From: Syncephalis fuscata S228
Lineage: Eukaryota > Fungi > Zoopagomycota
Length of the DNA stretch: 64,000 nt
Direction: 5' to 3'
NCBI GenBank assembly: GCA_025786725.1
Contig: JAHLTZ010000051.1
Location: 48,797-112,796, forward strand
In this document: positions 20,746 through 48,130 of the stretch, one piece after another
Layout: every line of letters begins with the position of its first letter
Position numbering within the stretch: position 1 is the first letter of the stretch
Position numbers and translations under genes: made by a program
The notes under the pieces: model-generated
What the model saw: the letters and a program-made list of their open reading frames with translations, nothing else
What the model was told of the DNA's origin: nothing
The model's database searches: none

Positions 20746-20766
20746 GTTGATTTTATAGTTTATAGA

Positions 20767-22166
20767 ATTTTGCCATTAATGCGTAATATTCATGGACATT
20801 GCAAGCTTGTATTATTTGTTATTTTAATGCATATAAACATTATAGAAATGTATTATTTATTTCCAATAGCTATGGCTGCAGCAAATAATTCGCCTTCATC
20901 TGTACTCTTTAAAATACCGATAGAAAGCTAATTTACAAATTTAAGCGTAAATCACTGTGTTAATACTATAACAGCATGTAGTAGTATTAAAATAATGGGT
21001 CTAGTGTAATTATGCGGTAAAAGACAGCAACATTTGAATTAAATAATAACAGCAATAATCTAACTAATAAAGCATTACTAATATCGAGTATACTTTTATG
21101 TAGAATCAGGCAAACTGCATGATATGATGCATAAGTATGGGTATAACATATAGGTAGCTATTGGCAAACTATAGTGCAACTGTATTGCGCATTGATGCAA
21201 TGGTTGTAGCAATACGCCATTAAATATGTAAAATAGCAGTTTTTTACCAATCATGGCTGTATAGCTTAAATACAGCAAAATGATCACTAGATTCGAGTTC
21301 AGCATGCTAAGCTGAATCGTTTGGTATAAAATATAGAACAACAATTTTTGCAAAAAAGTTGACCAAAATGCAAATTACGTGTAAGTTAGCTAGTGGAATA
21401 TAATTCAGCTTATGTTACAATCTAATGTAAATAAAAATGCCAAGTAATCGAATGTTTTACAACTGCAAATATATCAGTGTTAAAACATATCGATACTTGC
21501 GCGGTGTATTTATATACATATATGTATATGTAAAACCACTAACTAACTTACACGTAATTTGCATTTTGGTCAACTTTTTTGCAAAAATTGTTGTTCTATA
21601 TTTTATACCAAACGATTCAGCTTAGCATGCTGAACTCGAATCTAGTGATCATTTTGCTGTATTTAAGCTATACAAGCCATGATTGGTAAAAAACTGCTAT
21701 TTTACATATTTAATGGCGTATTGCTACAACCATTGCATCAATGCGCAATACAGTTGCACTATAGTTTGCCAATAGCTACCTATATGTTATACCCATACTT
21801 ATGCATCATATCATGCAGTTTGCCTGATTCTACATAAAAGTATACTCGATATTAGTAATGCTTTATTAGTTAGATTATTGCTGTTATTATTTAATTCAAA
21901 TGTTGCTGTCTTTTACCGCATAATTACACTAGAGTCATTATTTTAATACTACTACATGCTGTTATAGTATTAACACAGTGATTTACGCTTAAATTTGTAA
22001 ATTAGCTTTCTATCGGTATTTTAAAGAGTACAGATGAAGGCGAATTATTTGCTGCAGCCATAGCTATTGGAAATAAATAATACATTTCTATAATGTTTAT
22101 ATGCATTAAAATAACAAATAATACAAGCTTGCAATGTCCATGAATATTACGCATTAATGGCAAAAT
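20767..22166. repeat. 1.4-kb near-perfect palindrome P1, copy 1
   Basis: Arms 20767-21396 and 21536-22166 are almost exact reverse complements; the centre is imperfectly self-complementary around 21470. Confidence 0.97.
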
Positions 22167-22518
22167 GCTTATACAACTGCCCTGATTATAAATAAACAAG
22201 CAGATATTTGCATTATAGGTATAGTTAGTGGGAAGTGAGGCATGTGTAACTAAATGGATTATTTTGAATGCCGGTCATAGCTATTGTAAACCAATAATAA
22301 TGTGCTTATATAAGCTCTTGTCTATAAGCAACTAAACTGATGTTTTGCATAATGTCATAATTGGTTAAGAATGATATGTATGTGCAACTAAAGTAGCTAT
22401 AAACAAGTAAACTTTGTTTTCAAATGTTACTCATATTTATCAAAAGCAATAAACATTATTAACTGTATAGCACATTTACAGCTATTAGCATTGTCAATAC
22501 CACTATTATTAATTAATA

Positions 22519-23459
22519 GTGGCTATTTAGTGACCAGAAGTAATGTCGCATAATATGGTCTACCAATAATACTGCTTATGCTTACTTCACATTACCATTG
22601 ATGCTGATAAAATAGGCGATATACATGGCTAGCACATTGTTTATAACACGCATAGTCAACGATTTATCAGTGTAGGCTATTGCGTTATTATATAGACACT
22701 GTAAATATATACAATACCTACCACTAATATATTTGCTAATAATTGATACACTTTTTATTAGTATTTGTGTAGGCTTGTACTGTCAAATAGCAAAGGAGAA
22801 ATTATTACCGCTTTTTTATTAATCAAGTAATTTTCACCAATTTTTAATTCCATCATTAATATATCTAGGAATACATGATGTCATTCGTTATGACCGCATA
22901 GTATTGGTGTATTGACACATATAAGTCATGTATTTTTTTAAAATTATTGGAAGTTGCCACAAATAAAAACAGTAATATTATTATTAAAAATACCATTTTT
23001 AAGTACTTTTTAACTGTTAGTACTTTTTATAATTTTTCAATAATACATGACTTATATGTGTCAATACACCAATACTATGCGGTCATAACGAATGACATCA
23101 TGTATTCTAGCTAAGTTACTGATGGAATTAAAAATTGGTGAAAATTACTTGATTAATAAAAAAGCGGTAATAATTTTTTCCTTTGCTGTTTTGACAGTAC
23201 AAGCCTACACAAATACTAATAAAAAAGTGTATCAATTATTAGCAAATATATTAGTGGTAGGTATTGTATATATTTACAGTGTCTATATAATAGCGCAATA
23301 GCCTACACTCATAAACCGTTGACTATGCGTGTTATAAACAATGTGCTAGCCATGTATATTGCCTATTTTATCAGCATCAATGGTAATGTGAAGTAAGCAT
23401 AAGCAACATTATTGATAGGCCATATTATGCGACATTACTTCTGGTTACTAAATAGCCAC
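22519..23459. repeat. Inverted repeat P2, copy 1 (arms about 415 bp, loop 22935-23041)
   Basis: GTGGCTATTTAGTGACCAGAAGTAATGTCGC.. pairs with ..GCGACATTACTTCTGGTTACTAAATAGCCAC; inner ends GTCATGTATT / AATACATGAC. Confidence 0.95.
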
Positions 23460-25249
23460 GATCCAAATGTATACTAATAACAGCTATTAGTATATTACTA
23501 ACCATTGGGGCGCACGTCATATCATTGCTGTTGTACAACATCAAATCTCGTGAACAGTCATCGGTTGGTAGCAATGCATGTCATGATGCCACTTACTAAA
23601 CAAGTAGACATTTATGCTAATTTATGACGGCAGTAGGCTGATTGACAGCTAGCGGTAAGTATACACCAAGTGCTCATGTTATCTGTAGGTATGTTGCAGA
23701 TTGGCCAATACCACTAATAGCTGCATCATTTCGGTTGCTAACTATTTAGTAATAACTGGCATACTATTTTCAACAATCAATAGTAATATTCATGCTTATG
23801 TTGGTAACTAATAATGTATAAACAATAGCTTTGGTTAAAATATTTTATTAAACAAATTATACCATTGCCGTTGTCAATACAAATGGCATTTTTCTAACTC
23901 TTAGTTGTTACACTGTAATACACATCATTACCTTATAGTGGCATTAAGTTGTATAGATAGCACTTGCTGACTATTAATATCAGTGGCTATATCATGCCAA
24001 TGATTTACGCAGCATATTTAACACTAACTGTATATTAGTGACTAGTGATGCACAATAAATAGATGGCGTAAATACAATCAAATAATTAGCTGATAGTGAT
24101 GTTACATGTTCATTAACGTATAACTAACTGTTATCAATACTGTATTTCATTTGATTAATAGACATCTGGCTAATATAATGATGGCTATCGAGTTATAAGA
24201 TATTGATGATATGTTGGTGCTGATCCGCTATTACTAGCATATTTACTTAATAAAACACTGGCATAGCAGCATATTGATTATGACTAATCGGTTAATACAA
24301 CTAGTCAACAGCATTTGTAAATACTGCCTAATCAAACCATCAGTAATCAGTGCGGAATACTAATACTTAACTAGCTATATATACTAGCGCTATAACTAAT
24401 GGTTATTTGGTCATATGTCAATAATAGTTTTGCTGTGAGTTTCTGCTATTTTTATCGTTATTAGTAGTATAGCATTGTCAATTAAGTATTATAGACTTGA
24501 TAACGGTCATGAGTAATATTAAAATGGTGTTATTGCCAACTAATACGTCTGCTTATATGTTGATGACAACAGTAGTTTAATGTTTTTGTGTTCACTGCTA
24601 ATCATTGACAATTGTTTAATTGTTGATTTATATTTATATACACCATACAATTATACATATCAAGAACACAGCTGTTTACATATTGTGCCCATTATTGACA
24701 CTAACTACATCCGTATACAATGTGTTTATTAGTCATAATGCCGAATAAACATGCTAATGCATTGAAATAAACAGCCAAAGTATTATGGCATACACTAGCT
24801 GCAACCAGTAGATGTATACCGCGTTAGTTAATGATAGTAATATTATTGCATTTATTATTAGCCATCGGTAATTGTATAGCAATAGCAACATCTATTATAA
24901 CTTAGCCAGTTATATTGATGCCATGTGTTTAACCAGTTTGACAATTGCTTGTTGTTATTATAAGCCAACGGTATATCAGCAATATTAATATACACTATGC
25001 ATGATTGACGTATAACTAGGGGTATATTTAGGACTGATTGTATGGTAGTTTATACTGTTATGCCTACTAGCTAACCAACATTGTTGCAAATTGCTCTATG
25101 GATAGATTGTACATAATTTAATAAACATTATTTATACCTTTTATTAATAATTGCGTATTTATTTATTATAAACACAACAAATAATTAATAAAATAGTACT
25201 AAAATATAATTTTTATTCAAGTAATATTAATTTTAATGCATCCATCAAT

Positions 25250-27445
<2,196 letters not shown>

Positions 27446-27739
27446 GTTTACACAAGTAAGATAAAACAAAATACTCTTCAAAGGCGACACTAAGTGGCGT
27501 ATAACCTTTATAGACCGCGAGAAAAAGAGAAAGGTTGATAATGGCATGCGCATACCTGCATGTACTTGCACCCATTATTAATGATACATCATCATGTTAG
27601 ATTATAGGCTCAGTGCACGGATACCAAATAAGGAAGGAATCCCTTGTAATATATCGTGGGAAAATGCCAGTTTTAATGTTATTTAAAAACTGGTCTTATT
27701 AAAACTAGCACTTCCCACGATGTATATGCTTCCAATTGT

Positions 27740-29800
27740 TTTATTGAACATGGAACTGAGTGGTGAATGATGTCAGGGTCCATAATACTCATTATCATAG
27801 ATTGACTATTCAGTATGTATATATCCTCTATCTATCCACATCATTTCCATTGTATGCTCATACTACTATATATCACTACATCATACACTAAATACATTCT
27901 ATTTGTTATAGTTTTCAACACACGCCACTCATTTCACTTATTGCATCACATGCACTATAACTTCAACACTAATATTCATACATCCTCTTGTTTTATTTTG
28001 CCTTATATCATTGTATGTTTAAATGGCTGTTTATTTCTCGTTAGCTGTATTGTCACAGCTTAACTCTGGTTATTTCTTTACTCATGATTCACAAACACCC
28101 AAGTATAATAGCTTCCTCACCACCATTCATGCTTTTCTACTACTTTCTAGTGCTAATATGTCTTAATTGTATGAAACGGGCCAGTGATGAGCTGGTACAG
28201 CTATCATATTAAATAAAGTTAGCTATTGTAAGATGTATATTGTTTATTGTAGAATAAGCATCTATTAATCTACAGCCAATTGAATATAAGGACAAATTAC
28301 AGGCACATATACAATGTGGCTGTAGATCGTGTCGATTACTTTACTATCATTACTTTAATCACATTAAATAGACTTAACCAAGTATAAGTTGGTATAAAGC
28401 TATTCTTAGATGTGTTGCATTAGCATATAAAGTATAAGCCATTAGTATTCATCATAATTATTAGTTTAAAGCTAATCCCAATTAATTATGCTACAGGCCA
28501 TATAAATGATCGGCATTGTTTGAAATAAAGTCATAATTGATACTATCAAATAAACAGAGCTACTTGGTATGTTATATGTAAAGTTTAGTGTAAATCATTT
28601 TTACGCTTAATTGGTTAAATCGTGTAACCTAGATTTAATCCATCAGTTTATCGCACTGTAAAGATCTTGCTGATATTAGTGTTTGGTTAGTATGGTGGAT
28701 AGTAGCAAAGATTCTTTATACAATAGGTGAGCAGAGTGCTTTTTAGACAAGAAGATAAATGGCTTATCGCATACTAAACTAACAGGTACGTATACTAAGA
28801 TTCCTACTAGAGTGATGATGGCCATTTATACGGAAGACTACGATAATTACGTAGTATATTGGTCATATATGGTTTCAGGTGACTATGTTTTATTACATTT
28901 TCTGCAATTGCCGCAGTATATAAGCGACTTTACCACTCCTCTAAACCAGCATTGCCTTTTATCTTCTCTTTCTACTCTTTACCACTGGACATACGCTACA
29001 CTCATTCGCTCTTACTGTCATTAGTTGTTTAATATGCTTTGCACTCGCTGGACGTCTAATGATTACAGGATCGCTGCTGCTCATTATTTGGCATATTTAA
29101 GATAAGTAAACTAGTGTGTGCGCAGTGTAATACAGTCACTCTGTTAGCTATGTTGACATCGAGAGATATATAGTCACTAGACACTATATGATTTTGCGGA
29201 TGCATTCCAGCATGCTGCGAACGGTGTTAGACCACACTTAGCTGATTAGACTTCTGAATAGCGAATATGGTTATTGCTATGTGCTTGCCTGTTGTAATTG
29301 CATTGATGGTATTTGGGGGTATATGCAATATATAGTCTCTGCTTGGAGATATCACCTGTGCTAAATTCAATATGGAAGTGGTGATAAAGCTATGTTGTTT
29401 ATACAGCTTCCGCTATCTGGAACTTGCATGAAAGTGCATAGGATTTATACAATACAACGTATACAAACTGCCTCCATGATCATGCAGGGAATAGTAGTGA
29501 TGGGTGCAGTTGGTTGAATAGTTTATGCGCGCTAGTAGTCTTGGTCATGCTCACTGCAGAAGGCAAAGGAACTTGTGTTTTGTGGCTATGACCAACAGCT
29601 GTTCTGAATTCATATCAGTGTAATTGCTCAACAAACATTATTGCGGCGGTTAATTTGCATGCTAGTTTACTTATTTTATTTTAACTGATATAGATCCAAA
29701 AAATAGTTAAATTCGGCAAGAACAAGGCCACAATGCGCCACTAGTTACTTGGTTTGTATTATTATATTAGTGTTATGTAATTTTGTCAACTAAATAAAGG
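27740..29800 (+). repeat. Long M-family unit (M terminus plus about 2 kb body)
   Basis: Direct similarity to 61710-64000 (28960-29080 vs 63497-63615) and inverted similarity to 53350-55780 (29685-29765 vs 53385-53467). Confidence 0.85.
28990..29660 (+). pseudogene. Decayed secreted EGF-like-repeat protein gene inside the M unit
   Basis: TATATAAG, then a pyrimidine-rich leader, then a signal-like RYTHSLLLSLVV-ICFALAG; Cys fragments CIPAC-ANGV, CNCIDGIWG, GKGTCV; the paralog at 63530-63850 has CSCAF-GYG, CTPAC-VEGAC, CVCLRGY. Confidence 0.5.
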
Positions 29801-29914
29801 TAACGTTTTCTTTTGCAAATATTAACATATTACAATCAATTGTATTCAATACAACTACATCATACTAAATATTTAAATAAAATACCAGTGCTTTATTTTG
29901 CTAATTAAATTAAA

Positions 29915-30830
29915 TATTTCTATTACTGCTATTTAATAATTTATTAATATTTAATGTGATTTAGTGGTCAAATGATTGTATTTGATAATATTTATACATT
30001 TAAGTTAAACTTTCTTGCTATTGAACATGACGATGGGTGGTGAATGATGTCAGACATCAAATACTCATAATTGTAGATTTATTATCCAGTATGTATATAT
30101 CCTTTATTCACCTATATCATTCTCATTATATCCCACACTACTATACATCACTTTATAATATAATAAACAGTCCATTTGCTATAAATCTCAAGTATATATA
30201 GACTAACGAGTAAATGAACTGAGCTTTATCAATAATACAGCTAGAACCAGACGGACAGCGACTTTAGTCGGTTCGTAGCTCTTGTGTAATAAATCAATAA
30301 AGTTGTATAATGAATATCCAAACTAAAGTGACGATTAGCAGTGTCAAAGTTGTTGAAAATATATGCATGACCAATGAGCAGAATTAGTCAAGATTTATTA
30401 ATAATAAAGCTAGAACAAACATAAAAGCAGTTCTGGATAGAGGAAGACTAGGCGAGTATAGAATAGTATATAAAATGGTAAATGTACGGTGAGAAAGCAT
30501 ATAAAACGATGTCAAAGCTATAGTGTGTATAGCATAATGAGTGGTGTGAATAAAGTATATTGAAACATATAAACAATAGAATGTGTCTAGTATGTTATAA
30601 AATGGTATATATCATTATAGAATAAAATAGAATGATATAGGTGAATAAAGTATATGTATACTGAATATATGCATACTGGATAATAAATCTACATTGATGA
30701 GTATTTGATGATTGATGTCATTCACCATCAACTAGCATGTTCAATAGATTAGATGTTGTTAAATGTAGCCATTTGACCATTGGATCATGTTAAATGGCAA
30801 TAAATAAGACAGTAATAAATAAATCATTGG
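29915..30830. mobile_element. MITE-like unit bounded by inward-facing M termini
   Basis: M forward at about 29950-30200 and M reverse at about 30340-30795; no ORF; target-site duplication not identified. Confidence 0.6.
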
Positions 30831-30879
30831 CACTATTATTAAAATAGTTGGCGTAGATGCAGTATTGAATGTAGCTACT

Positions 30880-32760
30880 TGTAATCTAGCCATTCAAGTA
30901 TCAGTGACTTTAATTGAATACATGTACCAGTATTTTAGTTTTATTAAACAGAATAAGCACAACTTAGACAAACTAGTAATGGAGTCACAGTGTTATGTCG
31001 ATTCAGCAAACACCTCATGCGCTTCTTTATTAAATCTACCATTTCAATGTAATATATGTGTAATGCCCACCACCTCCCTCTTTATTACCACCACTTCAAT
31101 CAAACCAAAGCATTTAGCAGATGCGCAATAGCAATGCCAGTTAGTGTTGGGTAATATAAACCAGATAAGTATATGTCCCATTTAGAATCCAGTCCAAACA
31201 ATAGTACCAACGACAGTATACAGTATTGTTGTCGATGCTTGTGCCAACGAATTCTATAGTTGGTATTGTAAGTTGCATGCAAAATATTTGTGCCCGATAA
31301 CAAATGCAGTTCAGATATACTTGTTGATCCGGCACCAATGGTTGAATAGCTATAATAAAAGTGCGTTAGTATTGTTTAGTAGTAATAAGCACCTACATCT
31401 AGTTGATTGTTTCTTGCGTATAGTTTATAGTGTACACGAGTGTAGTTGTTTGTGTATTGTTGTTATTTGTTATACAAATAAACTAGAAATGTTGCTAAAC
31501 AAGATAGCAGCTAATACAGAAACTATACGTCCACCTGGAGTACCGACAATACTACGACTTGGGCGTAAGTAACATTTGTCAGATGCGTACAGCTCTATAT
31601 TAGCTGCTATCTTGATGGCGATGCTGTTCAATAAATGTTACAAGATGCCATGGCAATTCAAGCGTAGCAATAAGCTGCACCAAACTATGGATTCACCCAT
31701 TTGTAGTTGATGTTTAGAGCTGAACACATGAACACCACAACATATTACAACTGAACAACACATCGCCAATACTGATATGTTATTAAATAATTGTAATATA
31801 GTAACCAGTCTACACTAAGACATTATCAGTAGTAGAGATGCCATTTGTTTTCGGCCGCTAGTCCTTGTTTATGTCAGTGTTGTAAAAATTAATAAAAACG
31901 GCAGTTGAAAACTAAAATGGTATGGCGACTAGTGTTCTATTACAATCGTTTAACAACACCCACAAGTAAACAGTGTAATGCATGGTATTCAGTACGAATA
32001 AGCCACATATCACACCAGTCTAGTGTGCGATGATAGTATTCAGCAAGTTGAAGGCTATCAAACACACCTCCAGTGCACGTTCAATACAAGTGAGCACTAA
32101 CATATGACCACCCATACGGGTCGCCGCATCAACATGAGGGAGTGCACAGCAATACTGACTTGCTAAACACAGTACTGCACACCCTGTTATCCCACATATC
32201 TCCGCACTATGCCAGTATACAGCCGCCTAGTACAGGCAACCATATAGTTGCTGAGCTAGTATAGCACAGTAGTCTGCACTACTGTATTCTACATTCAACA
32301 CAGCTCAAATGCATAACGCAGTATATCGTGATCAACCAACAAGGAGACCACTCACCACTGGATATAGCTACTAGAACAGATGCTTCCATTAACAAGCAGT
32401 TTACAGCATATTAACAACTAGAAACAAGAGAAAGCGAAGTAATGAGCAAAAGTACGCTCAGCACAGCCTTATAAGCTTATTCCAAAATATATCCACCAAT
32501 TAGAATGGACAATATTGGTAGAGTACATGACGACTGTTTATTGGTGTATTGCGCCTGGCTGGACCATTTTGGTGCACGGATGCCATTTCACCACTAGATC
32601 AGATGATAGTCCCTTTTTTATTCTACACTTGTCCACAAAACAATCATATCTGCACCAGTCGGTTGACTCGATTGTCCATCCAGCTATACTGAAGTGTGCT
32701 TCCATGTCAATTATAAATACAGGTGGCAATAAATATTTTATTAGCAGTTTATGTCTATTC
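30880..32760 (+). repeat. Family B duplicated segment, inverted copy of 16550-18580
   Basis: Collinear reverse-complement alignment; retains splice-like GTAAGT..TAG signals. Confidence 0.85.
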
Positions 32761-32989
32761 TATAGCAGAATGATAAGCATGTGAATGAATAACAACATCG
32801 CAATTGTATTGCTAGTGATTTAATAAAATAAATGGTTGATATTTATAAATAACAAAATAGTGTCAAATGAACAGCAGTTTTAGCTAGCGCATATCTAATG
32901 TATTATACAGTTATAGAATATCATAAATATACAATGAGAAAGTATAAATAGCAATATTGAAGCTATATTATTTATTAAGCAATAAAGCG

Positions 32990-33212
32990 ATTTAATATAT
33001 ATAACAAATATATTTGTCTGTATATCATAGAATAGTATATATTGTATGAATATACAATGGAAATGATATAAATGGATAGAGGATATATGCATACTGGATA
33101 ATAATCTACATTGATGAGTATTTGATGGCTAATGTCACTCACCACCCATCATTATGTTCAATAGATTAGATGCTATTAAATGCAGTCATTTGACCACCAA
33201 ATCATACTAAAT
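32990..33212 (-). repeat. M-family terminus abutting the CCP1 3' end
   Basis: GCATACTGGATAATAATCTACATTGATGAGTATTTGATGG..TGTTCAATAGATTAGATG..CATTTGACCACCAAATCAT; close match to 30670-30795. Confidence 0.85.
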
Positions 33213-33267
33213 GATGTAACTGATATTTATTGAATTAACACAATCAAATTCAGATTGTTTATTTTTA

Positions 33268-34622
33268 TTAACTCAATGGTTCAAAAAGATATGTCTTTGT
33301 ATTAGGCGGGAAATTTACACCGAGCTCTTCCAGTTTCTGGAATGCTTTGGCAAAGTCTGTAAAGAATCGCTTCTCATCTTTAGCGTAGATCTTGGACCAT
33401 TTGGCAAACTCTTTGTCTGTAAGCATGGTCATATCAGTCGGTAGCATCATTAGTTTGCCGGTACTCTTATCAACAAACTGCTTGGGTCCATTCCACTTCT
33501 TTTCAACCCAGTCTTGATCCAATAAGACTGTGAAGAAATCGTTGGTGAATACAGTAGGAGAGAATGTCCATGGACCTATTAACATTTTGTATATCAGTAA
33601 AATAAATAGACATAATCACTTCACGGCTACCTTCAAAGCCCGATCGATTTGCGTGGCAACGACCCAAGGCATGAGCACCCATAAGCGCAACAATTTCCTG
33701 GTCATTGAATCCCATGCGATAGAAAATATCGCGGACATGTTGTGAGCCTTGAGCAGCATCGGGTAGACGGCCATCTGGTGTACAGTCAGCAGCCAATTTG
33801 TCGGCACGACCTGGACGCCATGGGATTTGTGGACCACCCTAGAATACATAGATAGATACACAGATAGTTGGATAGATTAGTGAGTCGGTAGTTAAATAAA
33901 CAAGCTTAACATACCATCTCCTGTATTGCCACTACACCACCTAATGACCATAGATCGGCATAGCTAATACCTGGGAATCGCTTCTTAACTTGTTCGATAT
34001 GATTACGCGCGTATTCAAGACCGGCATTGGCACCATGTGATGACTAGAATGCACAATATTTGACAGTGAATAAAGATGACGTGATTATTTCCTTTTCCTA
34101 TCTACTTACCTCAGATTTAAAGCGCATGGTAGCGCCGTCACTACCACCGGTATTAGTGTTCTTATCATAAGTACCAGCCGCATGCCAGGCCAATCGCAAT
34201 AGAACAGGAGCGTAGCTACCATCATCGTAGTCATTATCCTCAAGAATCTCTGCAATAGCCTTATAGACAGCATAGTAGTCTACAGAGCCAGCTGCAGCTG
34301 CGCTAGCTCCAGCCTTTGTCTTGCTATTGGAGGATGACGGTGGTGCATTAAGAAAATAGGCTACACCCGCTCCAACGCCAACCAATAACGCGGTATAAGC
34401 AAGAAAGTTGGCCCGTTTTGGTGGCGGAATATTGTGGCCCTGCTCCGTCGACGAATAGTGACGAAGACTTAGAAGGGAGCGAGCAGTAGCCGCTTGGCTA
34501 TTAACGGCCGCGCGTTGAGATGCTACAGCAGACGAGGGCGTGAAACGACTTGCTAGTGCAGCCGACGATAGACTGCGCGAAGCAGTGGTCGGTGCACGTA
34601 GAACAGTACGAGTAAATAGCAT
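33268..34622 (-). CDS. CCP1: Mitochondrial cytochrome c peroxidase, 4 exons
   Basis: [78 protein letters not shown]; presequence plus hydrophobic segment. Confidence 0.95.
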
Positions 34623-35190
34623 ATTGATATCAATAAATATGAAAGAAAGTGAGAGTGCTACAGTGAATCGATGTGATAGACAAGGCGCGTAGGGATGAGT
34701 AGTGAATGGGAGAGTGCAAGAGATACGTACGTACTTGTACATCCATGTTGCTCATTAGAGGTGGGCTTTTAAATCCAACACGGCCTGAGCTTTCGTCATT
34801 CCTCTCACCATACGGTCACTAATGCATGTGCACAGTGTGTGGGGGATTGTTTGCCAAATAGCAATATGAATAGTAACTACATGTGGCGTGTAAAGATTAA
34901 TAGGAAAATAGCGGTAACACATAGAGTGGATCGATGACTAAAACTATCAAAGTAATTAACAGTTTATAATATGAGTCAAAACAACTAACTATGTATAAGA
35001 ATGGTTGATGGAATGAATAAAGAGAAGAGATAGTGGTGGCACTATTGAGAGTAAAGCTCATTGCCAATATTCACCGACTGTGTCTCCATTTCATAATTAC
35101 TATTGCTACTCGTTAACCATCTATATCGTTGATAGTACAAACCCTGGTTAAGTATATATATATAGTTTTATATATATATGTATAGATATC

Positions 35191-38100
35191 ATGGAGTGGA
35201 ACGAATTCTGTGAAGAACAGCAGTTGGTGACGCGACTATTAAGCGCCCAGCTTACTGTCAGAGCTGAGCTGTTCCGCAATCAATTATTGCCGCGACTACG
35301 CCATGAAGGTAAAGCGTTGTACTGTTAGCAATAGACATGAGGCGGTTGGATCTAACGCGTCTCTCGTTATTTGTAACTGAATAGATGTGTCACCGCAAAC
35401 ACTCGTAACGCTATTGCGATTATTGACGTTTACGGTGCCGCGTTACCATGATAGCCAATCGCGACGATTGGTTATGGAAGTGTTGGAGGCGCTATCACGC
35501 GTTGAAGGATTTGATAACGTAGCTACTGCCATACTTGTTGAGGCCAGTGCTAAAGCAGGACAAGAGTCAGCCATGTAAGTTTCATTCATACTATATTCAT
35601 GTCAAAGTGTAAATTAATAACTGTTGAATTAAATTAAATAGTGTTGCAGCCACTGATCGATATGTTTTATTAACATGGGCAAATCATTTATGTTCACTTA
35701 TTCTATTGCGTTCTTCTAAGGATGGTGACAATGATAAATCAATTAAAGTGGATGAAACAATTTGGCAATCCCTTGTAGATTGTCAAGCAAGTCTACTTAA
35801 TGCACTACTCGTTGACCAACTAGCACGTCGTCGTGTACAGCAAGCGGCCATTGCTTCAGTACGACGCACTCTACGTCAAGTAAGTAGTGTTGACTAGCTA
35901 GTTAGTTAGCTAGTTAATAGTAATTGGTTTACTAATGATCGTAATACTAGCATGTAAAAGATGCGCCACTATGGATTCAATCTTTATTAAATAAAGTGAC
36001 ACCAGCTCATCGTAATCTGGCACTATTAGGCATTGTATTGGATGTTGTTGGCAATAAAGTAGAGAATAAGGTAAGTAATATGGATAGTACAAGTATTGTA
36101 TACTCAAAATATGTATAAATATGTGTATATATATAGACAGCGATAATTCAATATTATGTGGATACCGTGTTATCAGCCAAACAGAAATTACCCAATTATG
36201 TTTCAGTAAGTTACAAGCTATACTGAATTATAAAGATAATTGCTAACAATTATTATAAAGACGGCTTTATCTGGATTCTTTTCGCAAGCATTGACAATTG
36301 AAGATACACAACAGCTGATTGTGCCAGTATTAGAAAAGATGTTACTTCGATCGCCAGAAGTAGCATTAGCCTGTAAGTAATTTAATCTACTAAATATTCT
36401 ATACTATTTACGCTAATGATGGCCTTAATATAGCATTACAAGAACTGACTCATGCTGTGTCATTTGATGTGTCGACCATGTTTAAAGATAAATGGATGAA
36501 TCCATTAAAGACACAGCTAGTATCTACATCAGAGAAAGTACGAGCTGATGCTGCTGCGGCGTTTGTTACATTAATTCAAAAGTCTGATGATGAAGAAGTG
36601 ATTGAAGCCATTGTAAAAGATCTGCTTAGTCTATTGACCACTGGTAAGTAGATGGCATTAAATGACTAGTAATAGCTATTGATTGATTAATAGGTAAAGT
36701 GTCTACATGGGGCCATCGACAGATTTATTACACGCAACTATCGCAATTTATGGATCGATTTGACCATATTGATGATGTATTGCTCCAAGGTGCTGTGACT
36801 ATGCTGCCTAAAGAGAATAATGAAACAGCATTTGGTTCTCTAGTTCAACTCGTTGTTAAAGGTGTCTTTTTACGAGCATCCACGGATAATGGAGATGTGA
36901 ATAAGACAGCAATACAAGCATTGTCTAAGGGATTGGAGAATACGAAGCCGGCCCTTCGACAAGCTTGGTACATTGCGCTTGGTCAATCTGCACTCACTCA
37001 ATCCATATCGCCGGAGTCTAGTTTGGCCCATCATTTGTCGGATATTATAGCGATTCTTATTAAGCACGTGCAACAACAGGCATCGACTAAAGCTACCGCT
37101 GCCACTACTGGTACTAGTACTGGATTACTGGATGCGTATATTGCTGTTACTATTATTGAACGGGCCCGATCCTGGTTTGTCACCTCCACTGACCACGAAG
37201 TAAATGTCCTATTGGCCAAGTCTCAATACGAAGCCACTCTTCTTAAAGAAACGTCATTTTTATTTGCCGAAAAGATAGTACTCAAACTAACGGGTGAATC
37301 CATTCAATGGTATTTACAAGCGATTACGGCATTTACTGCCAACAATTACGTGTTACCCGACACCTTACAGTAAGTGTTTAAAGGTCATTATTCAATAATT
37401 AGTGGTAATTAATACTGGTGGTGGTGGTGGTGATGATGATGATGGTAGATTGTTGTATGGTGGTGCGTTTATTCACTTTATGTTACATGGCACAATGGAG
37501 GAGCGTCGATTGACTGATCGTGTACTACGTCAATGCACAGAGTCTAATCCCCTACTAGTTACCGAGTCTATTCAACGGGCCCTATTACACTGGTTACCTC
37601 AAGTAATTAAGAAGATTTAATAACTAGTCAACTACTTACTTGCTGTTTATTTATTAGATGGAAAAGGGACAGCGAGTGGAGGGATTGCGTTCAGATCAAA
37701 TTACTTACCGCTTAGTGCGTATATTAACAGCAGCCACTACCTTTACCGCTACATGTGATGCTTCTATTAGAAATAAGGCACTAGTACACTTTTTACTAGT
37801 GGCCCACTATCCACTACTAGGTAAATAGCAAGTCTATTGTATTATATTATTTAATTTATCGTATCTTATATATATTATATTATGAATGTGTAGCGATGAA
37901 GGCAGTAAATACACTTGGACTACACTTGCTCAACGAGCCAATTTTGACTTTTCCGTACTATCAGGCCATGTAACACAACTAATCGATCAAATCATTGATG
38001 GACTCTGTGACTCTGATAAAGCAAGTATAATGACCTATTAATGATATATTAATGATATATTAATACCAATCTATTATGTTATATAATAGAAAACTGCCTG

Positions 38101-41100
38101 TTTACGTATGGTGCCTACATTAATCTTTGTTGATGCAGACACTTTTGTACCTCGTTTGTCAGAATTAACTGTTTGTTATTTAAAAAATCAAGATCCAAGA
38201 AATGATACAGCATCAACATCAACCTCCATCCCAAGTATAACCGATGATGATTTAGCTATATGGCGTACAGAACCTGGTACACTCTATGTTGATGGTAAGT
38301 CGAATATCCCTACTCTAACCTATACCAATACGAACATCTATGTTATATAATAGTATTGCGTCGTGGTCCTAAAATAGCTGAAGATAAGAATCGTAAAAAC
38401 TACAACGACGAACAATGGGAAAGAGAACTTAAAAAGGATCTGGCCAAAAGAAAGGACAATCAGTTACACAGAAATTGTCTAAAGAAGAACAAGCACTTGT
38501 TGATACTCAGTTAAAGAAGGAATCAACGATTCGTGCTTATGTTCAACAATGGTACGATCATTTAACCCGAGGATTAGACCTTGTACAAGCATTAATGAAT
38601 GGCAAGACTAAAGTTGAAGCTTCATTGACTCAATTGACACCGATTCTATTAACAATTCTACAACAAAATGGAGAAGCATTAGTAGGCAGTCAACTGGCCG
38701 ATGCCTTTATAGTAAGAAGTGGCCATCTATCTATTGATACATCTATTAACGTATTTGTAGGCATTGAGTGAAGGTTTATCAGATCGATTGGGTCATGCCC
38801 GTACCACAATTGCCCGTGCTATATTGCGTGTATTTAATGCCCAAATGATTCATGAAGAATGGCAACGTGAACCACTTAAAGGTAGCTATATGTTATAGTA
38901 TATAATACATTACACTAACATTTGTTGGTAGAATTGGTTATTCGTGCCCTGTATCGTATTCGATTTGCTACTGAACAGAAACCATTACTGCCTGGTTCAT
39001 TCTCGTATGGCTATCCATTAATCCAACGGGTTATTGAACATAATGGTATTGGTTATCCGGAAGGATTTGTTGAAGTACTGGACGATGAGACAGGTGTTAC
39101 TGAGAAGACCACCGAACAAACGATGGTGTCTATGGACATTTTAAGATTCCATGCTCAATCAGGTAATTAGGGCTATTAACTAATGGATTACGGTGTATTT
39201 ATGTAATGTGGTGTAATTAGGTGATCAGTCATTGATGCCACGTCGAGAAATACTTGCCTCATTACTTGTAGTCATTCGTGATTATTCAAAGTTGATGCAT
39301 CAAGCCAAGGTAGATTAATAGTTATAATACAATGGCTATAACCCAATAGTAATGTGTATGTATATATATATTGATTAATAGGAAACATTGGAGACATTCT
39401 GTGATGGCATGGCTGAAGATGTGACACGTTATGAGATTGATACTTTGTATGAAGCATTATTATGGTCATCTGAAATGGTGCGCATGGCCTGTTTAGATGC
39501 ATTATCCGTAAGTTGAATAGATTATATGTAATTATTAGTATTGGTGCTAATACACTGTATAGTCATGGGACTTGAATCCATTTGGATATAGTCGTGAATT
39601 GTGGACTGCTTGTCATGATGAAGATAGTACCATTGCTGCCACAGCTACAGCTTGTTGGACTGAAGCACAACTAAAAGTACCAAGTAACTATCTAGATGGT
39701 CTACTAGATTTAATAAGTAAGACTAGATATACTATAATATATATATATATATATACTAATTATATATTATTAATAGTTCATGGTGCATCGGTTATTAGAA
39801 AGAGTGCTGGACGAGCACTAGCAGATGCAGTGCAACAATATCCATCTACACTTCAATCTACGCTTAATGCCATCTATAAAGAATATGCAGAACTAGTAAG
39901 CAGTTAATGTTAGTCGTAATTATTAGTTATATTAATGTTATTATTGGTATTTGATAGGCAGTTGCGGCTATTCCAAAATATGATAAATTTGGTCTAGTTA
40001 TTCCAGAGACGGTGGATCAAAAGGATCCATGGGAGGCCCGTGTGTCATTAGGCCATGCCATTAAAGCGTGTGTGCCTTTATTGACCAGTACTGAATTACA
40101 GTCACTATTTTCATTTTTATTAGCCGGTGAAGCACTTGGTGACAAGGAAGAAGGTGTCCGTCAATCCATGCTCGAGGTAACTAGCTACAATATCAAAGAG
40201 TGTGTATATTAATTGCCTATTTTAATGGATAGGCGGGTAATACGGCGATCAAGTTACATGGTAAAGACCAATTACCATTAATGACGGTATTTGAAAAGTA
40301 TTTGAAGTCACCGGCCAAGGCGAGTGAAGTCCATGATCGTATTCGTGAAGGGGCCGTTGTTTTATATGGCAGTATGGCTCAGTTCCTCGATAAGACCGAT
40401 CCACGTATTCGATCGGTTGTTGACCGTCTAATTGACACGCTGAAGACACCGTCCGAGTCGGTACAACTAGCCGTGTCAGAGTGTATTTCTCCACTAGTTA
40501 AGAGTATGAAAGAAACGGCACCAGGTCTAGTGGATCGATTGGTGGATCGCATGTTACATGCCAAGAAATACGCTGAACGTCGTGGATGTGCCTTTGGTCT
40601 AGCGGGTGTGGTTAAAGGCTATGGTATATCATTATTAAAGGAGTGCCACATTATGTCTACGTTAAAGGAAGCGGCTGAAGATAAGAAGCACATCTATACA
40701 CGACAAGGCTCTATGCTGGCCTTTGAAGCATTCGCCCAGCTACTTGGTCGTCTATTTGAGCCATATGTCATCCAGGTTGTTCCACTGTTGCTATCTGGAT
40801 TTGGCGATAGCAGCAAAGATGTACGTGATGCCACAATTGAAGCAGCCCGTATGATTATGAGCAAGATCAGTGGCCATTGTGTCAAATTAATTATGCCTTC
40901 ATTAATGATGGGTTTACAAGATCGACAATGGCGTACACAACGTGGATCAGTGGAACTGTTGGGTGCCATGGCCTATTGTGCACCTAAACAACTATCGGTA
41001 TCATTGCCGCATATTGTACCACGTCTAGTTGAAGTGCTGAATGATGCACATCAACAAGTACAAGAATCGGCGAAGGAAGCGCTACTAAACTTTGGCCAAG

Positions 41101-44100
41101 TCATTAGTAATCCAGAGATTCAAGATTTGGTACCGACTTTGATGGTTGCCCTCTGTGATCCAGATACTAAAACGAATACAGCACTATCTGCCCTATTAGA
41201 AACATCATTTATTCATTATATCGATGCACCTTCTCTTGCTCTTGTAAGTAGCAAACAAACATATATACATATTATGCGGCGATACTCATAACTATCCCTT
41301 AGATTATGCCTATCATTCAACGTGGTTTGTGTGAGAGAGGCACACAAGTAAAGCGAAAGTCAGCCCAGATTATTGGTAATCTTTCATCGTTAACGAGTGC
41401 CAAGGACTTTACACCATATCTTACGCATCTTATGCCTGGATTACGTGAAGTATTGGTGGATCCAGTGCCTAGTGCTCGTGCCACTGCGGCTATGGCCTTG
41501 GGTGTATTGGTACAGCGTTTAGGTGAAGAACAATTCCCTGAACTAGTGCCACAGCTATTGCAGACACTTAAATCCGATACAAGTGGTGTGGATCGACAAG
41601 GTGCTGCCCAAGGTCTTAGTGAAGTTATTGCCGGTCTAGGTATTCAACGACTTGACGAACTACTACCGGATATGATTGCCAATACATCAAGTAGCAAGGC
41701 TTATGTTCGTGAAGGTTTTGTTTCACTGCTTATTTACTTGCCTGTCACCTTTGGTACACGATTCCAACCGTATTTGGGTCAGATTATTCCACCTATTCTA
41801 GCTAGATTGGCTGATGAGTCGGATTATGTACGCGAAGCTTCTCTAAAGGCGGGTCAAATTATTGTTGATCACTTCTCGTCGACAGCGGTCGAGTTGCTAT
41901 TGCCAGAACTTGAACGAGGCCTATTTGAGGAGAATTGGCGTATTCGTCATAGTTCAGTGCAGCTAATGGGCGATCTACTCTATAAGATGACGGGTTTGCA
42001 AGTGAAGTCATTAACGGCCGTTGCCAGTCAACCAGTAAATATGGCTGCCTCGAGCAATCCAGATGGCGAGGCCGAAGCCGAAGAGGAAGTAACGGTAATG
42101 ATTACCGAAGAAGGACGTAAAGCACTTGTCGATGCCCTTGGACAGCAACGCAGAAACTCGGTACTGGCTGCCCTTTACGTTGTGCGATCCGACAGTAAGT
42201 AGTCATTTATAGTTGTGCGTCTATCCAATACATCTAACCTATTTTGTGTAGTATCGTCTGTTGTACGACAGGCAGCAGTTATGGTGTGGAAGTCGATTGT
42301 ATTCAATACACCACGTACAATTAAGGAGATTCTACCTAATATTATGGAAATTGTCCTTAAACATCTGGCCAGTCCTATTGAACTGCTACGACGTGAAGCA
42401 GCAGCCACTTTAGGTGATTTGGTGCGCAAACTAGGTGAAAGTATTCTATTGCGTATCATTCCACTATTGCAAACAAGTCTGGCCTCTGATGATAGTCATC
42501 AGCGACAAGGGGCCTGTATTGGATTGTCGGAAGTAATGCAAACTGCAGGCAAAATCCATGTATTAGAGGAAATCGACACGATGGTGCCTATCATCAGATC
42601 AGGCGTATGTGACACGACACCACAAGTACGTGAAGCAGCCGCCCAAGGTAAATAGACGATAATAGACATTAATAGATATTAATATGTTGTTTGATAGCGT
42701 TTGATGTGTTGCATGGATTGGTGGGTCCACGGGCGGTTGATGACATTATTCCCGCGTTGTTGAATCAATTACATGCGGGCGAGTCTCATGCCCTTGAAGG
42801 ATTGAAGGAGATTATGACGGTTCGAGCCAGTGTCGTATTCCCTGTACTCGTGCCAACACTGGTCCAAGTACCAATGACCGAGTTTAACGCGAATGCCCTT
42901 GGTGCACTGATATCTGTAGCAGGCAATGCCCTAAGTCGTCGACTAGATCTAGTATTGGATGCACTAATGGCTTCATTGAATCAATCGGATGAATCTGCCG
43001 TATCTGCCGTGCAAAACACGATTGAAGTACTTGTAACGAACATTGAAGATGAAGATGCCGTTCACGCTCTTATGATGCGTCTATTTGAAAAGATGCGAAA
43101 GCAGCAGGATATTGCTGAGGAAAGTGATGAAGATACTAAGGCGGTGGTTGACCATAATAGTGTAAAACCGGCTACGTGTCGTGTATTGGCTTCATTCGCA
43201 CACTCTAATCCAGAAGGTGTTGGTCGCTACATCAGTGACTGGTTGCGTATACTGATCGACTTTTACGTTGTCGATAACGAATTGACTAAAGCAGCGTCGA
43301 ATGCTGTCGATGCACTTATTAAATCACAGCCTAAATCTGAACTTGATAGATACATTAACACGGCGCGTGCATCCATAAGAAGAGCTGTTGAAGCACTATC
43401 AGAGACATCATCTACCCTTCTACCTGGTCTATGTCTACCCAAGGTAAATATTATGGATGTTATGGATGTTGATATTAATAATACATTAATAGGGAATTGC
43501 ACCTTTCTTGTCTATTTATTTGCAAGGATTAATGAATGGTACAGCTGATGTGCGTGAAGTGTCGGTTCTAGGCATAGGTAAGTCTTAGTTGTGGATTCAG
43601 CACATAAATATTAATATATTGAATATATAGGCGAGCTTATTGAACATACGAGTCAATCGGCACTAAAGGCCTATGTCACCCAAGTAACTGGTCCATTAAT
43701 TCGAGTCATTGGTGAACGTTACCCAGCACCTGTAAAAGCGGCCATTTTACAAACCTTGGGGTAAGTAATTTGTAGCTTTACATAGTAACTGATTAACCAA
43801 TACATCCTATTAGTATTTTGTTGAATAAGGTGTCGATTCTACTTAAACCATTCTTGCCCCAACTGCAACGTACATTTATTAAATCATTATCGGATACCGA
43901 TGGTGCTGTACGATCACATGCAGCATCGGCATTGGGTATTTTAATTACCTTACAGACCCGTGTGGACACGTTGATTGTAGAGTTGTGTACGGGTATTCGC
44001 ACGACAAGTAGCCATGGTATTCGTGAAACAATGTTGAATGCTCTCTATAGCGTCATTGCCAAGGCGGGAGCAGCTATGAATGAAACCTGTCGCCAATCAG

Positions 44101-45130
44101 TTGAAAAAGTAATTGCCGAGTGCCTAACCGATAGTACAAGTAAGTAGGGGCGGGATCAGTTATTAGTTGTTGATAGTGTGCTAATACTGATGTTTAATGG
44201 TAGCGACGATTCAAGTGGCGGCTGCCCGTTGTCTAGGTGCTTACGGAAGTACAGTTGAACCGGCACAATCAGAGCCACTATTCCGGTAATTGAAGCTATA
44301 ATAGGATTTACAATAGTGTATCTAATGATTTGTTTGGTTTATAGCGCGCTTATTTTGGCGGGTAATGAAGAGGAGGCGTTTGATTTACCGGCTATTCTCG
44401 GTATTGATGCACTACTCATTGAAGAACCGGTCTATTTTGAACAAGTTAACGTAGCCGATGCAATAATTCGTCGTGTACTATTGACGGCCAAGGATGCTGA
44501 TGTAAGTAGCTAACAGATGATTATCCAAATATGACTATTAATGTATTAATAATATGTTACAGTATCAAGTAATAGAAATGACCGCCTATGTACTTGGCCG
44601 TCTGCTAGCTTGTCCGGCTTATAGGCAAAATGATTCGGCTAAATTGCTATGGGATAGCTTAATTGCGCTTATTACCGGCCCATATGGCAATGATGTACGT
44701 CAAGCGGCGCTCGTAGCTGTGAAGCGTGTAGCGAAACATCATCATCAAGAAACGATTACGCCCGACCTACTTCAGCTTATTGTGCCGGCCGTGTTAAGTC
44801 AGCTGAAAGATCGTAGTACACCGGTGAAACTAGCAGCGGAGCGCACTTTACTTTATGTATTGGCACTGCAAAATAACGATGACGTATTTGAAGTAAGTGG
44901 AACATAATAATAGCTTGAAGTTTATTAATGATGACGTGTAGCGCTTTAATGAAACGGGCGATGCAAATATCGTAAAGACGCTTGCCGACTATCATCGTCG
45001 TGTTTTGTCCAAAACAGCCATTACTGCTCGTGAAGATGGTCAGAATAGCGGTGATGAAGGCAACGAGGACGGCTTATTGCGTCGTGGTAACAAAATGACT
45101 ACCCCAAGTCATGCTGATACATCTACTTAA
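35191..45130 (+). CDS. GCN1: Translational activator GCN1 (HEAT repeats), more than 20 exons
   Basis: [113 protein letters not shown]; last exon 44942-45130 is open. Confidence 0.95.
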
Positions 45131-45696
45131 TAGTGATGAAAAAGATGATGATGATCATTATGATAACGACAAAATGATTTTACTAATTAGAACTATTGTT
45201 TTATTTATTAAATAAATATAAGCAATACTATATAATGGCATGTTTACATTTTAGATATTATTATTTATTAATGTTACTATTACTATTTAAATTGAGTGAT
45301 AGTATGACTAAATGGCCTATAGATGCATCTATAGTATATAATAAATGAACAATATGGTATTGAATAATATACAATTTGTACAAGCTGTGGCAATCATATT
45401 AAAATAGTGTAAATTGAAATTATATAAATAAAATGGATTGTTAGTATGGTTAAATAGCAATATTAACTACCCAATACGCTATATTCTAAGCGTTGAATAA
45501 AGATTTCTAAGCACTAAACGATAAAGTTGTAATATTGGAATAAAGTATTGCTTTTCACCTGATTTAAAACCTTTAAAAACAAAGGCATAATGACATTATT
45601 TATAGCTATTTCAGTTGTACAAATGTCTTTTAATTAGTTATATTATCATTCAAAGCATTGTTTATTTATATATAGTTGAAATATTATTAAAGTACT

Positions 45697-48130
45697 TTTT
45701 AATGCATATAAACATTATAGAAATGTATTATTTATTTCCAATAGCTATGGCTGCAGCAAATAATTCGCCTTCATCTGTACTCTTTAAAATACGATAGAAA
45801 GCTAATTTACAAATTTAAGCGTAAATCACTGTGTTAATACTATAACAGCATGTAGTAGTATTAAAATAATGGCTCTAGTGTAATTATGCGGTAAAAGACA
45901 GCAACATTTGAATTAAATAATAACAGCAATAATCTAACTAATAAAGCATTACTAATATCGAGTATACTTTGTGTAAAATCAGGCAAACTGTATGATATGA
46001 TGCATAAGTATGCATATAACATATAGGTAGCTATTGGCAAACTATAGTGCAACTGTATTGCGCATTGATGCAATGGTTGTAGCAATACGCCATTAAATAT
46101 GTAAAATAGCAGTTTTTTACCAATCATGGCTGTATAGCTTAAATACAGCAAAATGATCACTAGATTCGAGTTCAGCATGCTAAGCTGAATCGTTTGGTAT
46201 AAAATATAGAACAACAATTTTTGCAAAAAAAGTTGACCAAAATGCAGATTACGTGTAAGTTAGCTAGTGGAAATATAATTCAGCTTTATGGTTTTACAAA
46301 TCTAATAGTAAAATAAAAAATTGCACCAAGTAAATCCGAAGTGTTTTGCAACACTGCACCAATCATAATAACAAGTTAGTATAAACAAATATCGAGACAT
46401 TGCAGCGATGTATGTCATATAATATATGTATATGTAAAACCGCTAACTAACTTGCACGCAATTTGCACTTTTGGTCAACTTTTTTTGCAAAAATTGTTGT
46501 TCTATATTTTATACCAAACGATTCAGCTTAGCATGCTGAACTCGAATCTAGTGATCATTTTGCTGTATTTAAGCTATACAGCCATGATTGGTAAAAAACT
46601 GCTATTTTACATATTTAATGGCGTATTGCTACAACCATTGCATCAATGCGCAATACAGTTGCACTATAGTTTGCCAATAGCTACCTATATGTTATATGCA
46701 TACTTATGCATCATATCATACAGTTTGCCTGATTTTACACAAAGTATACTCGATATTAGTAATGCTTTATTAGTTAGATTATTGCTGTTATTATTTAATT
46801 CAAATGTTGCTGTCTTTTACCGCATAATTACACTAGAGCCATTATTTTAATACTACTACATGCTGTTATAGTATTAACACAGTGATTTACGCTTAAATTT
46901 GTAAATTAGCTTTCTATCGTATTTTAAAGAGTACAGATGAAGGCGAATTATTTGCTGCAGCCATAGCTATTGGAAATAAATAATACATTTCTATAATGTT
47001 TATATGCATTAAATAACAAATAATACAAGCTTGCAATGTCCATGAATATTACGCATTAATGGCAAAATGCTTATACAACTGCCTGATTATAAATAAACAA
47101 GCAGATATTTGCATTATAGGTATAGTTAGTGGGAAGTGAGGCATGTGTAACTAAATGGATTATTTTGAATGCGGTCATAGCTATTGTAAACCAATAATAA
47201 TGTGCTTATATAAGCTCTTGTCTATAAGCAACTAACTGATGTTTTGCATAATGTCATAATTGGTTAAGAATGATATGTATGTGCAACTAAAGTAGCTATA
47301 AACAAGTAAACTTTGTTTTTAAATGTTACTCATATTTATCAAAAGCAATAAACATTATTAACTGTATAGCACATTTACAGCTATTAGCATTGTCAATACC
47401 ACTATTATTAATTAATAGTGGCTATTTAGTGACCAGAAGTAATGTCGCATAATATGGTCTACCAATAATACTGCTTATGCTTACTTCACATTACCATTGA
47501 TGCTGATAAAATAGGCGATATACATGGCTAGCACATTGTTTATAACACGCATAGTCAACGTTTATCAGTGTAGGCTATTGCGTTATTGTATAGACACTGT
47601 AAATATATACAATACCTACCACTAATATATTTGCTAATAATTGATACACTTTTTATTAGTATTTGTGTAGGCTTGTACTGTCAAATAGCAAAGGAGAAAT
47701 TATTACCGCTTTTTTATTAATCAAGTAATTTTCACCAATTTTTAATTCCATCATTAATTATCTAGAATACATGATGTCATTCATTATGACCGCATAGTAT
47801 TGATATATTGACACATATAAGTCATTTATTATTGAAAAATTATAAAAAGTACTAACAGTTAAAAAGTACTTAAAATGATATTTTAATAATAATATTGCTG
47901 TTTTTATTTGTGGCAACTTCCAATAATTCTTTAATGTCATCTATATGCGTCGATGTGTTAATACTAAGCGGCTATAATGAATGGATTACGTATTTATAGA
48001 TACATTACTGATGATAATAAATATTGATGAAAATTGTTTGATTAATAAAAAAGCAGCAACAACTCCTTCTTTGCCACTTTGATAATAAAAGCATATGCAA
48101 ATACTAATAAAAAATATATAATGAATTAAT
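45697..48130. repeat. Second copy of the P1+P2 double-palindrome module
   Basis: P1 arms about 45697-46270 and 46440-47012; near-identical direct repeat of about 20822-22930 up to about 47825; P2 loop inverted; P2 right arm 47940-48130 diverged. Confidence 0.95.

Follow-up and report, generated by a model that had tools for sequence, protein, structure and literature searches.

The two copies of a palindromic module in Syncephalis fuscata S228, found 25 kb apart in a 64,000-nucleotide (nt) stretch of contig JAHLTZ010000051.1 (positions 48,797 to 112,796, hereafter the window), are best explained by known processes acting on fold-back-type repeats, and they represent no new self-copying element. 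Each module consists of two palindromes, P1 and P2, which are most likely non-coding repeats of the fold-back type from two dispersed families. The arms of P1 probably recombine with each other by ordinary homologous recombination, and the second copy of the module is probably a mosaic left by repair at a palindrome apex. This account replaces the original prediction, which had regarded the module as a candidate self-homogenising hairpin element.

The boundaries of P1 and P2 and the extent of the duplication were obtained by repeat finding and BLAST, and the arms were compared in a four-arm alignment. The module had been described as occurring twice in direct orientation. The duplication itself is real (20822-23250 versus 45697-48141, 93% identity overall and 97-100% between 20822 and about 22900), but P2 of copy 2 is a poor palindrome. 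P1 copy 1 (20757-22178) has arms of ~640 nt that are 99% complementary over 495 nt plus 139 nt. P1 copy 2 (45697-47080) has arms that are 100% complementary across 545 nt, its left arm being short by the outer ~66 nt that are still present in its right arm. The loops of the two copies correspond in direct rather than inverted orientation (78% versus 60% identity), and their differences are mostly single-base insertions in copy 2. The low likeness of the copy 2 loop (46271-46439), ~78% between flanking arms of 97-100%, reflects either a poor consensus at the palindrome apex or a mutation hotspot. Beyond its flank A part, the 337-bp spacer that follows P1 occurs in the genome only in the two module copies, which differ there at six positions, four of them 1-nt insertions or deletions. 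As single-stranded DNA, P1 folds to one hairpin of -764 kcal/mol. No open reading frame (ORF) of more than 85 amino acids was found in or beside the module, in keeping with the earlier view that it holds no credible ORF, and neither an Rfam family nor a tRNA was found in it.

The joint evolution of the P1 arms within a locus is seen directly in the window. For each duplicated pair, sites were classed across the four arms as by locus, by side, crosswise or singleton. Over 577 columns the window P1 has eight sites by locus, one by side (adjoining the apex), none crosswise and eight singletons, mostly near the apex, and three sites in copy 1 are unmirrored. All four of the differences between copies that had been reported as mirrored in both arms are so in the alignment. 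Since the chance of a matching change at a mirrored position is estimated at ~0.5% per site, the eight mirrored sites are not coincidence. Within the loop interior, left groups with left and right with right. Loops that group by side between arms that group by locus indicate that the palindrome and its asymmetric loop are older than the separation of the copies, and that the arms were symmetrised afterwards. When changes were polarised with nine outgroup arms, mirrored derived states were found in both window copies, namely G at 21103 and 21140 and a deletion at 21351 in copy 1, and deletions at the copy 1-equivalent positions 20917 and 21094 together with A>G at 21098 in copy 2. As is looked for in gene conversion, same-locus arms share derived states that are absent from the paralogous locus, and the spacer between them is not homogenised. 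The proposal that each palindrome was re-symmetrised after duplication thus stands for P1; it fails for P2, which has kept old differences.

The same pattern is repeated elsewhere in the genome. Contigs of the 29.4-Mb assembly (371 contigs) are labelled C and fetched loci L (L049, C24:36947-40178; L050, C24:55595-58719; L054, C35:521777-527184; L051, C224:150781-157302). Five other duplicated P1-family pairs, whose homologous flanks mark them as paralogous or allelic loci, gave counts by locus, by side and crosswise of 13:0:0, 5:1:1, 7:0:0, 9:3:1 and 33:1:0, the last of which contains a 13-column terminal block and amounts to ~20 independent sites. When the inner 330 nt of 28 arms from 14 loci were placed on a maximum-likelihood tree, 13 label changes sufficed, the minimum possible, compared with a mean of 23.4 after shuffling and no value as low as 13 in 200 shuffles; the copy 1 arms form a clade with support of 97/95. 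Arms therefore group by locus and not by side, as the original prediction had anticipated for such a tree, and homogenisation of arms is general in the P1 family. It can also fail or be overridden, as the split arms of the C350 locus indicate. One of these arms carries 35 private changes, a number more in keeping with import from another member of the family than with point mutation. Private single-arm changes in six locus pairs comprise 107 transitions and 29 transversions, with C>T about as frequent as T>C and few changes at CpG. No GC bias was detected, AT-to-GC and GC-to-AT changes standing at 13:11 among mirrored sites and 35:30 among singletons (p = 1).

P1 proved to be a dispersed family when the suggested genome-wide search was made. 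Genomic matches to the P1 arm number at least 60 (70-78% identity) and commonly form inverted pairs; apart from the two modules no genomic copy is more than 78% identical to P1. In the relatives the arms measure 400-940 nt and enclose loops of 130-190 nt, through which the alignments continue, the loops being homologous family-wide. Arms of different loci are 69-78% alike; within the ~21 distinct P1-family palindromes, arm likeness is at least 94% in 14, 84-91% in four and 77-78% in three. A 335-bp inner arm unit, present once in each window copy, is tandemly repeated in relatives (1.9 copies at 75% in L050, and up to three in tandem per array at other loci). The palindromes of the family lie between unlike but conserved flanks, A and B. 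An M-type end of a miniature inverted-repeat transposable element (MITE) lies ~390-470 nt outside the palindrome, at comparable spacing, in L049, L021 and L019. In L051, the palindrome has 2.25-kb arms that are 99.5% alike around a 2-kb non-coding middle, with flank A at both sides, which implies that it grew outward over the position held by flank B in other copies. Contig C24 carries a second pair of composite modules (L049 and L050), each with a P2-core-like and a P1-like palindrome, in direct orientation, 18.6 kb apart and 96-97% alike. The order P1, flank A, P2-like core is common to the window and C24 at only ~72% identity, and the window interior has no DNA similarity to the C24 region except for a repeat, termed E, that adjoins a module.

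P2 is a nested structure with a different history. It extends from 22516 to 23462 in copy 1 and from 47415 to 48141 in copy 2, and its arm has at least 63 genomic matches. At its centre lies a core of 499 bp, with identical sharp boundaries in at least nine independent copies and the ends TAATTAATACAC...GTGTATTAATTA; the terminal motif has 37 matches, compared with three for a control. The core has the marks of a MITE, being shorter than 800 bp, non-coding, sharply bounded by inverted-repeat ends and present in many copies. It ends in TAATTA-rich sequence, and in several copies the flanks are mutually inverted, which masks any short direct duplication. Elsewhere in the genome the core arms are mostly 72-80% alike, and up to 89%. 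P2 copy 2 has arms that are 73% alike; it lacks the outer right arm, and its right half derives from another repeat lineage. In copy 1, at least six differences between the arms have the left-arm state in common with copy 2, and at four or five of these sites the right-arm state is common to the C35 and C168 copies, so the differences predate the copying and were never converted. The sign of gene conversion seen in P1 is lacking in the outer arms of P2, and as a palindrome P2 is not self-homogenising.

The orientation of the loops provides a second trace of exchange between arms. Three of nine comparisons are flipped: L006 against L013 (100% inverted versus 66% direct identity), L049 against L050, the two C24 modules (97.7% versus 56%), and P2 copy 1 against copy 2 (91% versus 65%). 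Four other P1-family pairs, the window P1 among them, have unflipped loops. The two halves of the P2 loop also have another arrangement with respect to repeat E in copy 1 than in C168. Inversion of the loop is the reciprocal product of arm-arm recombination, and gene conversion is its non-reciprocal product.

Copy 2 had been taken for a simple duplicate of copy 1. Its sequence reads instead as a recombinant with a switch point at the P2 apex. From 47380 to about 47730 it is 100% identical to copy 1 read directly; from 47809 to 47870 it is 97-100% identical to copy 1 read inverted; and from 47873 to beyond 48400 it is 98-100% identical to C320:86.6-87.4 kb, a diverged core arm followed by a repeat termed F. 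At its left end (45697) copy 2 adjoins unique sequence. All four combinations of left and right partners are found around P2 centres, namely E and E on C35, P1 spacer and E in copy 1, P1 spacer and F in copy 2, and E and F on C320. Repeat E runs for 1.6 kb to the right of P2 and ends sharply at 25089. The locus L054 is a 5.4-kb palindrome on the P2 centre with repeat E inverted at both sides and arms 97.7% alike. Single P2-core-like arms followed by E-like sequence (67-72%) were also observed on C26, C99, C313, C123, C206, C220 and C217; on these small contigs they form inverted pairs ~10.3 and 12.3 kb apart (for example C26:1828-2070, 12364-12606 and 24857-25099), which suggests a multi-copy unit of ~23 kb with two unique parts between inverted repeats. 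That these double-palindrome contigs are mitochondrial DNA was considered and is not supported, no COX1 match being found anywhere in the assembly.

These observations can be brought together in one sequence of events. Gene conversion without crossover would copy a new mutation from arm to arm, so that arms of one locus evolve jointly and drift away from those of other loci, and a crossover between arms would invert the loop in the manner of a flip-flop. Conversion would halt at the heterologous loop and fail where arms have diverged too far, as in P2. The loops grouped by side, the failure to restore the 66 nt missing from the outer end of the left arm in copy 2 and the differences kept by P2 are limits to be expected of recombination. 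For the mosaic, the most likely route starts from a resident palindrome of P2 core plus F at 47.6-49.3 kb. A break in this palindrome, at its apex or close by, would have been mended with the homologous element 25 kb away as template, the copying proceeding leftwards from the P2 apex into P1 and laying down a patch of 2.2 kb. Synthesis would have stopped inside the left arm of P1, where a join that needed no homology would have closed the patch at 45697. If the nascent right arm was copied by snap-back in the course of this synthesis, the perfect arms of copy 2 could be explained. Snap-back in the repair of copy 2 cannot account for the mirrored derived states of copy 1 or for the five other pairs.

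Several points weigh against this account. The assembly has to be relied on as it stands: the public runs (four small ones of 2017 from one sample and one of 2019) consist of contigs only, and none of the very small contigs examined spans any palindrome. The outgroup arms used for polarisation are only ~70% identical, the GC-biased signature of conversion known from mammalian palindromes is absent, and the apex break is deduced from a single mosaic. The insertions in the copy 2 loop and the indels in the spacer look like the consensus noise of long reads. Repeats of the P1, P2 or E type stand at contig starts or ends (C168:1-2864, C328:835446-837042, C140:201-1155, C351:7-643) and appear to be where the assembly breaks. 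Small size of the read records, noise-like differences and family copies at contig ends are also what one would cite in favour of an artefact of assembly or polishing, in which arms were collapsed or cross-polished, or fold-back chimeras arose from amplification or missed adapters, and the mirrored variants are unreal. We regard such artefactual palindromes as unlikely. The same palindromes occur with homologous loops at many loci and in paralogous pairs, with arms from 77% to 100% alike, where chimeras would be unique and 100% alike. Their loops are conserved in the family and bear no visible resemblance to adapters, the three unmirrored sites of copy 1 argue that the arms were not forced into identity, and cross-polishing would have blended the two copies with each other no less than the two arms. 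In the 2019 run (X5, same species label), eight of nine changes relative to window positions 20586-20771 are C>T, an excess that would fit either bisulfite conversion of the library or a relative of the repeat at that place with strong deamination.

An alternative of similarly low probability is that symmetry is regenerated from one arm, the nascent strand snapping back onto its own first arm in a rolling-hairpin or fold-back template switch, in place of continuing conversion. Several features of copy 2 speak for such a process. Its arms are 100% identical over 545 nt, its derived states are mostly mirrored 1-nt deletions, the kind of change to be expected of error-prone repair synthesis with subsequent snap-back, and its left arm ends 66 nt short; elsewhere, palindromes vary in how far their arms extend into the flanks (arms of 2.2 kb on C224 and of 2.7 kb on C35). 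Yet copy 1, too, has mirrored derived states alongside unmirrored ones, the five other pairs display graded, patchy homogenisation with many singletons, and flipped loops need reciprocal exchange. Moreover, no replication-initiator nuclease, hairpin-resolving enzyme or ORF was found in or beside the module or in the fetched relatives inspected. The same considerations apply to the self-homogenising or rolling-hairpin element first envisaged, which is disfavoured by the lack of coding capacity, by a patchy pattern typical of homologous recombination and by loops that flip through crossover. Flip and flop forms of a loop, a trait of hairpin replicons, are present, and crossover between arms accounts for them equally well. 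A rolling-hairpin or hairpin-ended replicon is not supported, there being no ORF of more than 85 amino acids in or beside the module, and the palindromes are internal to a chromosomal contig of 112.8 kb, between host genes. The persistence of long palindromes in multiple copies had further been taken to suggest active maintenance against their instability. Such maintenance is not needed: all these palindromes have asymmetric spacers of 110-230 nt, which in yeast and E. coli strongly reduce the formation of hairpins and cruciforms.

A bolder scheme, to which we give little credence, is that palindrome centres are themselves active, with structure-specific cutting at the apex followed by re-joining or re-copying of the halves. 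The P2 arm plus E would then derive from the inverted-repeat ends of the ~23-kb unit of C26, C99 and C313, possibly an inverted-dimer or hairpin-ended replicon that integrates pieces into chromosomes. If this were true, apex cutting would explain why all four partner combinations occur around P2 centres, why loops are flipped and how arms grow.

Selection for complementarity of the arms, through a functional hairpin such as a long hairpin RNA for RNA interference or a DNA structure acting as replication origin or boundary, is less probable still. The very long pairing of the arms and its large folding energy speak for it, as does the module order kept between the window and C24 at such low identity. 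The mirrored changes, in contrast, are exact copies that include indels, merely compensatory ones (such as G-U pairs) not being seen; many P1-family members have decayed arms (77-88%), P2 of the same module is decaying and Rfam has no match. Two independent insertions of already symmetric subfamily members, without symmetrisation at these loci, can practically be discounted: P1 and P2 are both multi-copy families, but a 337-bp spacer with no other occurrence in the genome is common to the two copies, as are loop asymmetries by side, no other genomic copy comes closer than 78% to P1, and copy 2 is incomplete at both ends and mosaic.

Features of the two modules and their surroundings are collected in the table below. 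The genes that separate the module copies match aldehyde dehydrogenase, peroxidase (a weak match) and GCN1, in agreement with the ALDH7A1, CCP1 and GCN1 named earlier. A giant element with the two modules as its ends, in the manner of long terminal repeats, was rejected, even though C24 has a similar pair of modules: the interior contains host genes and, repeat E beside a module excepted, does not resemble the C24 region at the DNA level. For annotation, elements of the P1 and P2 type should be masked as repeats, and ALDH7A1, the peroxidase gene and GCN1 should not be regarded as cargo of a mobile unit that spans the 25-kb interval between the modules. About ten M-type MITE inverted-repeat ends (~90 nt) lie in the window (12088, 20282, 27736, 30018-30768, 33098, 49237, 49639, 55672, 61733), with a full-length element of ~730 bp at 30018-30747. 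A pair of such ends bounding the P1 unit was considered and rejected, the M-type end being found only at the flank B side.

Table. Coordinates of the module copies and adjoining repeats in the window
Feature	Coordinates	Strand	Remarks
Inverted-repeat end of M-type MITE, outer edge of flank B	20282..20370	+	70-80% to ~10 such ends in the window
Flank B, non-palindromic, conserved in P1 family	20292..20756	+	~67-70% alignable with L049, L021, L019, L007
P1 copy 1, left arm	20757..21396	+	Repeat finding, BLAST, four-arm alignment
P1 copy 1, asymmetric loop	21397..21535	.	Homologous by side to copy 2 loop
P1 copy 1, right arm	21536..22178	-	Repeat finding, BLAST, four-arm alignment
Spacer, copy 1	22179..22515	+	First ~70 nt is flank A (22179-22246); remainder unique to the two module copies
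P2 copy 1, outer left arm	22516..22739	+	
P2 core, 499-bp palindromic MITE-like element, two-part loop ~22931-23045	22740..23238	.	Sharp boundaries
P2 copy 1, outer right arm	23239..23462	-	
Repeat E, contiguous with P2 right arm	23463..25089	+	96-99% copies on C35 (two, inverted around P2), C168, C328, C24, C320, C180
P1 copy 2, left arm without outer ~66 nt	45697..46270	+	Repeat finding, BLAST, four-arm alignment
P1 copy 2, loop	46271..46439	.	Many 1-nt insertions relative to copy 1 loop
P1 copy 2, right arm	46440..47080	-	Repeat finding, BLAST, four-arm alignment
Spacer, copy 2	47081..47414	+	99% identity with copy 1 spacer
P2 copy 2, half matching copy 1 (outer left arm, core left arm, one loop half)	47415..47872	+	
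P2 copy 2, other loop half and diverged right arm, different lineage	47873..48141	-	98-100% to C320:86.6-87.4 kb; 48-85% to copy 1
Repeat F, contiguous with diverged arm	48142..49337	+	~95% to C320; 84-88% to C320:30 kb, C1:979 kb, C304

P1 is not established as a transposon. Neither end of the palindrome (20757, 22178) shows a visible target-site duplication, its arms abut the unlike conserved flanks A and B, and neither an empty site nor a coding partner turned up. The 2-kb middle of the C224 palindrome and the fetched stretch of the C35 palindrome have no ORF of 110 amino acids or more, a genome-wide transposase screen not having been made.

The module provides a compact natural example of the concerted evolution of inverted repeats. 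Six independent duplicated pairs of sub-kilobase, non-coding palindromes are all homogenised by locus, the flipped loops supply the reciprocal product, and the limits of the process are visible in the decay of diverged arms such as those of P2. Nested palindromes, and mosaics joined at palindrome centres, appear to be unusually common in this genome. This wider pattern is the more promising lead, and the genome could serve the study of how palindromes originate, grow and break in a wild eukaryote. Loss of palindrome-processing nucleases was rejected as a cause of this richness, matches to Sae2/CtIP and Mre11 being present.

Among known systems, the closest in anatomy are the fold-back-type transposons of Drosophila (FB, Galileo and Tetris), in which most of the element consists of inverted ends, separated by a short middle that is non-coding; P1, with arms of ~640 nt and a loop of 139-169 nt, is built in the same way. 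Galileo, a fold-back-like transposon, has recruited flanking sequence into its inverted ends and shows chimeric copies and conversion, and its authors proposed that long inverted ends draw recombination and conversion and thereby recruit flanking sequence (PMC3573991). Tetris has fold-back inverted ends with internal tandem repeats of ~220 bp and a non-coding middle (PMC4079207). The 335-bp sub-repeats in the arms here resemble those of Tetris, and a highly variable structure, flanking DNA recruited into inverted ends, chimeric copies and suspected conversion are shared with these transposons. Unlike the Drosophila elements, the P1 family is found in a zoopagalean fungus, a mycoparasite, has no target-site duplication or coding partner that could be found, and lies between conserved asymmetric flanks, so that the repeated unit extends beyond its arms.

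In behaviour, P1 resembles the sex-chromosome palindromes of mammals and willow, which are kept by arm-to-arm gene conversion (PMC8600007, PMC8327919, PMC7023750). Both have arms that are 99-100% alike around a unique, unhomogenised spacer, and both group by locus or species and not by side. The arms of the P1 family are, however, 0.4-0.9 kb long, compared with 10 kb to over 1 Mb on sex chromosomes, and P1 is a non-coding, multi-copy dispersed family that lacks the GC-biased signal.

Recombination between inverted repeats also produces flip-flop inversion in the plastid inverted repeat and the yeast 2-micron plasmid. As in those systems, the segment between the arms occurs here in both orientations among copies; in contrast to them, no site-specific recombinase is indicated, and the isomers are seen between paralogous or allelic copies and not within one locus. 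Finally, palindrome-provoked breaks and fold-back inverted duplications occur in yeast. The events deduced here differ in being natural, fixed and small, in a wild genome, with a break that is presumed from the sequence. They agree with the yeast cases in that the recombinant junction of copy 2 lies exactly at the palindrome apex, and in that arms from the same centre reach 222 nt, 475 nt and 2.7 kb, as in fold-back duplications.

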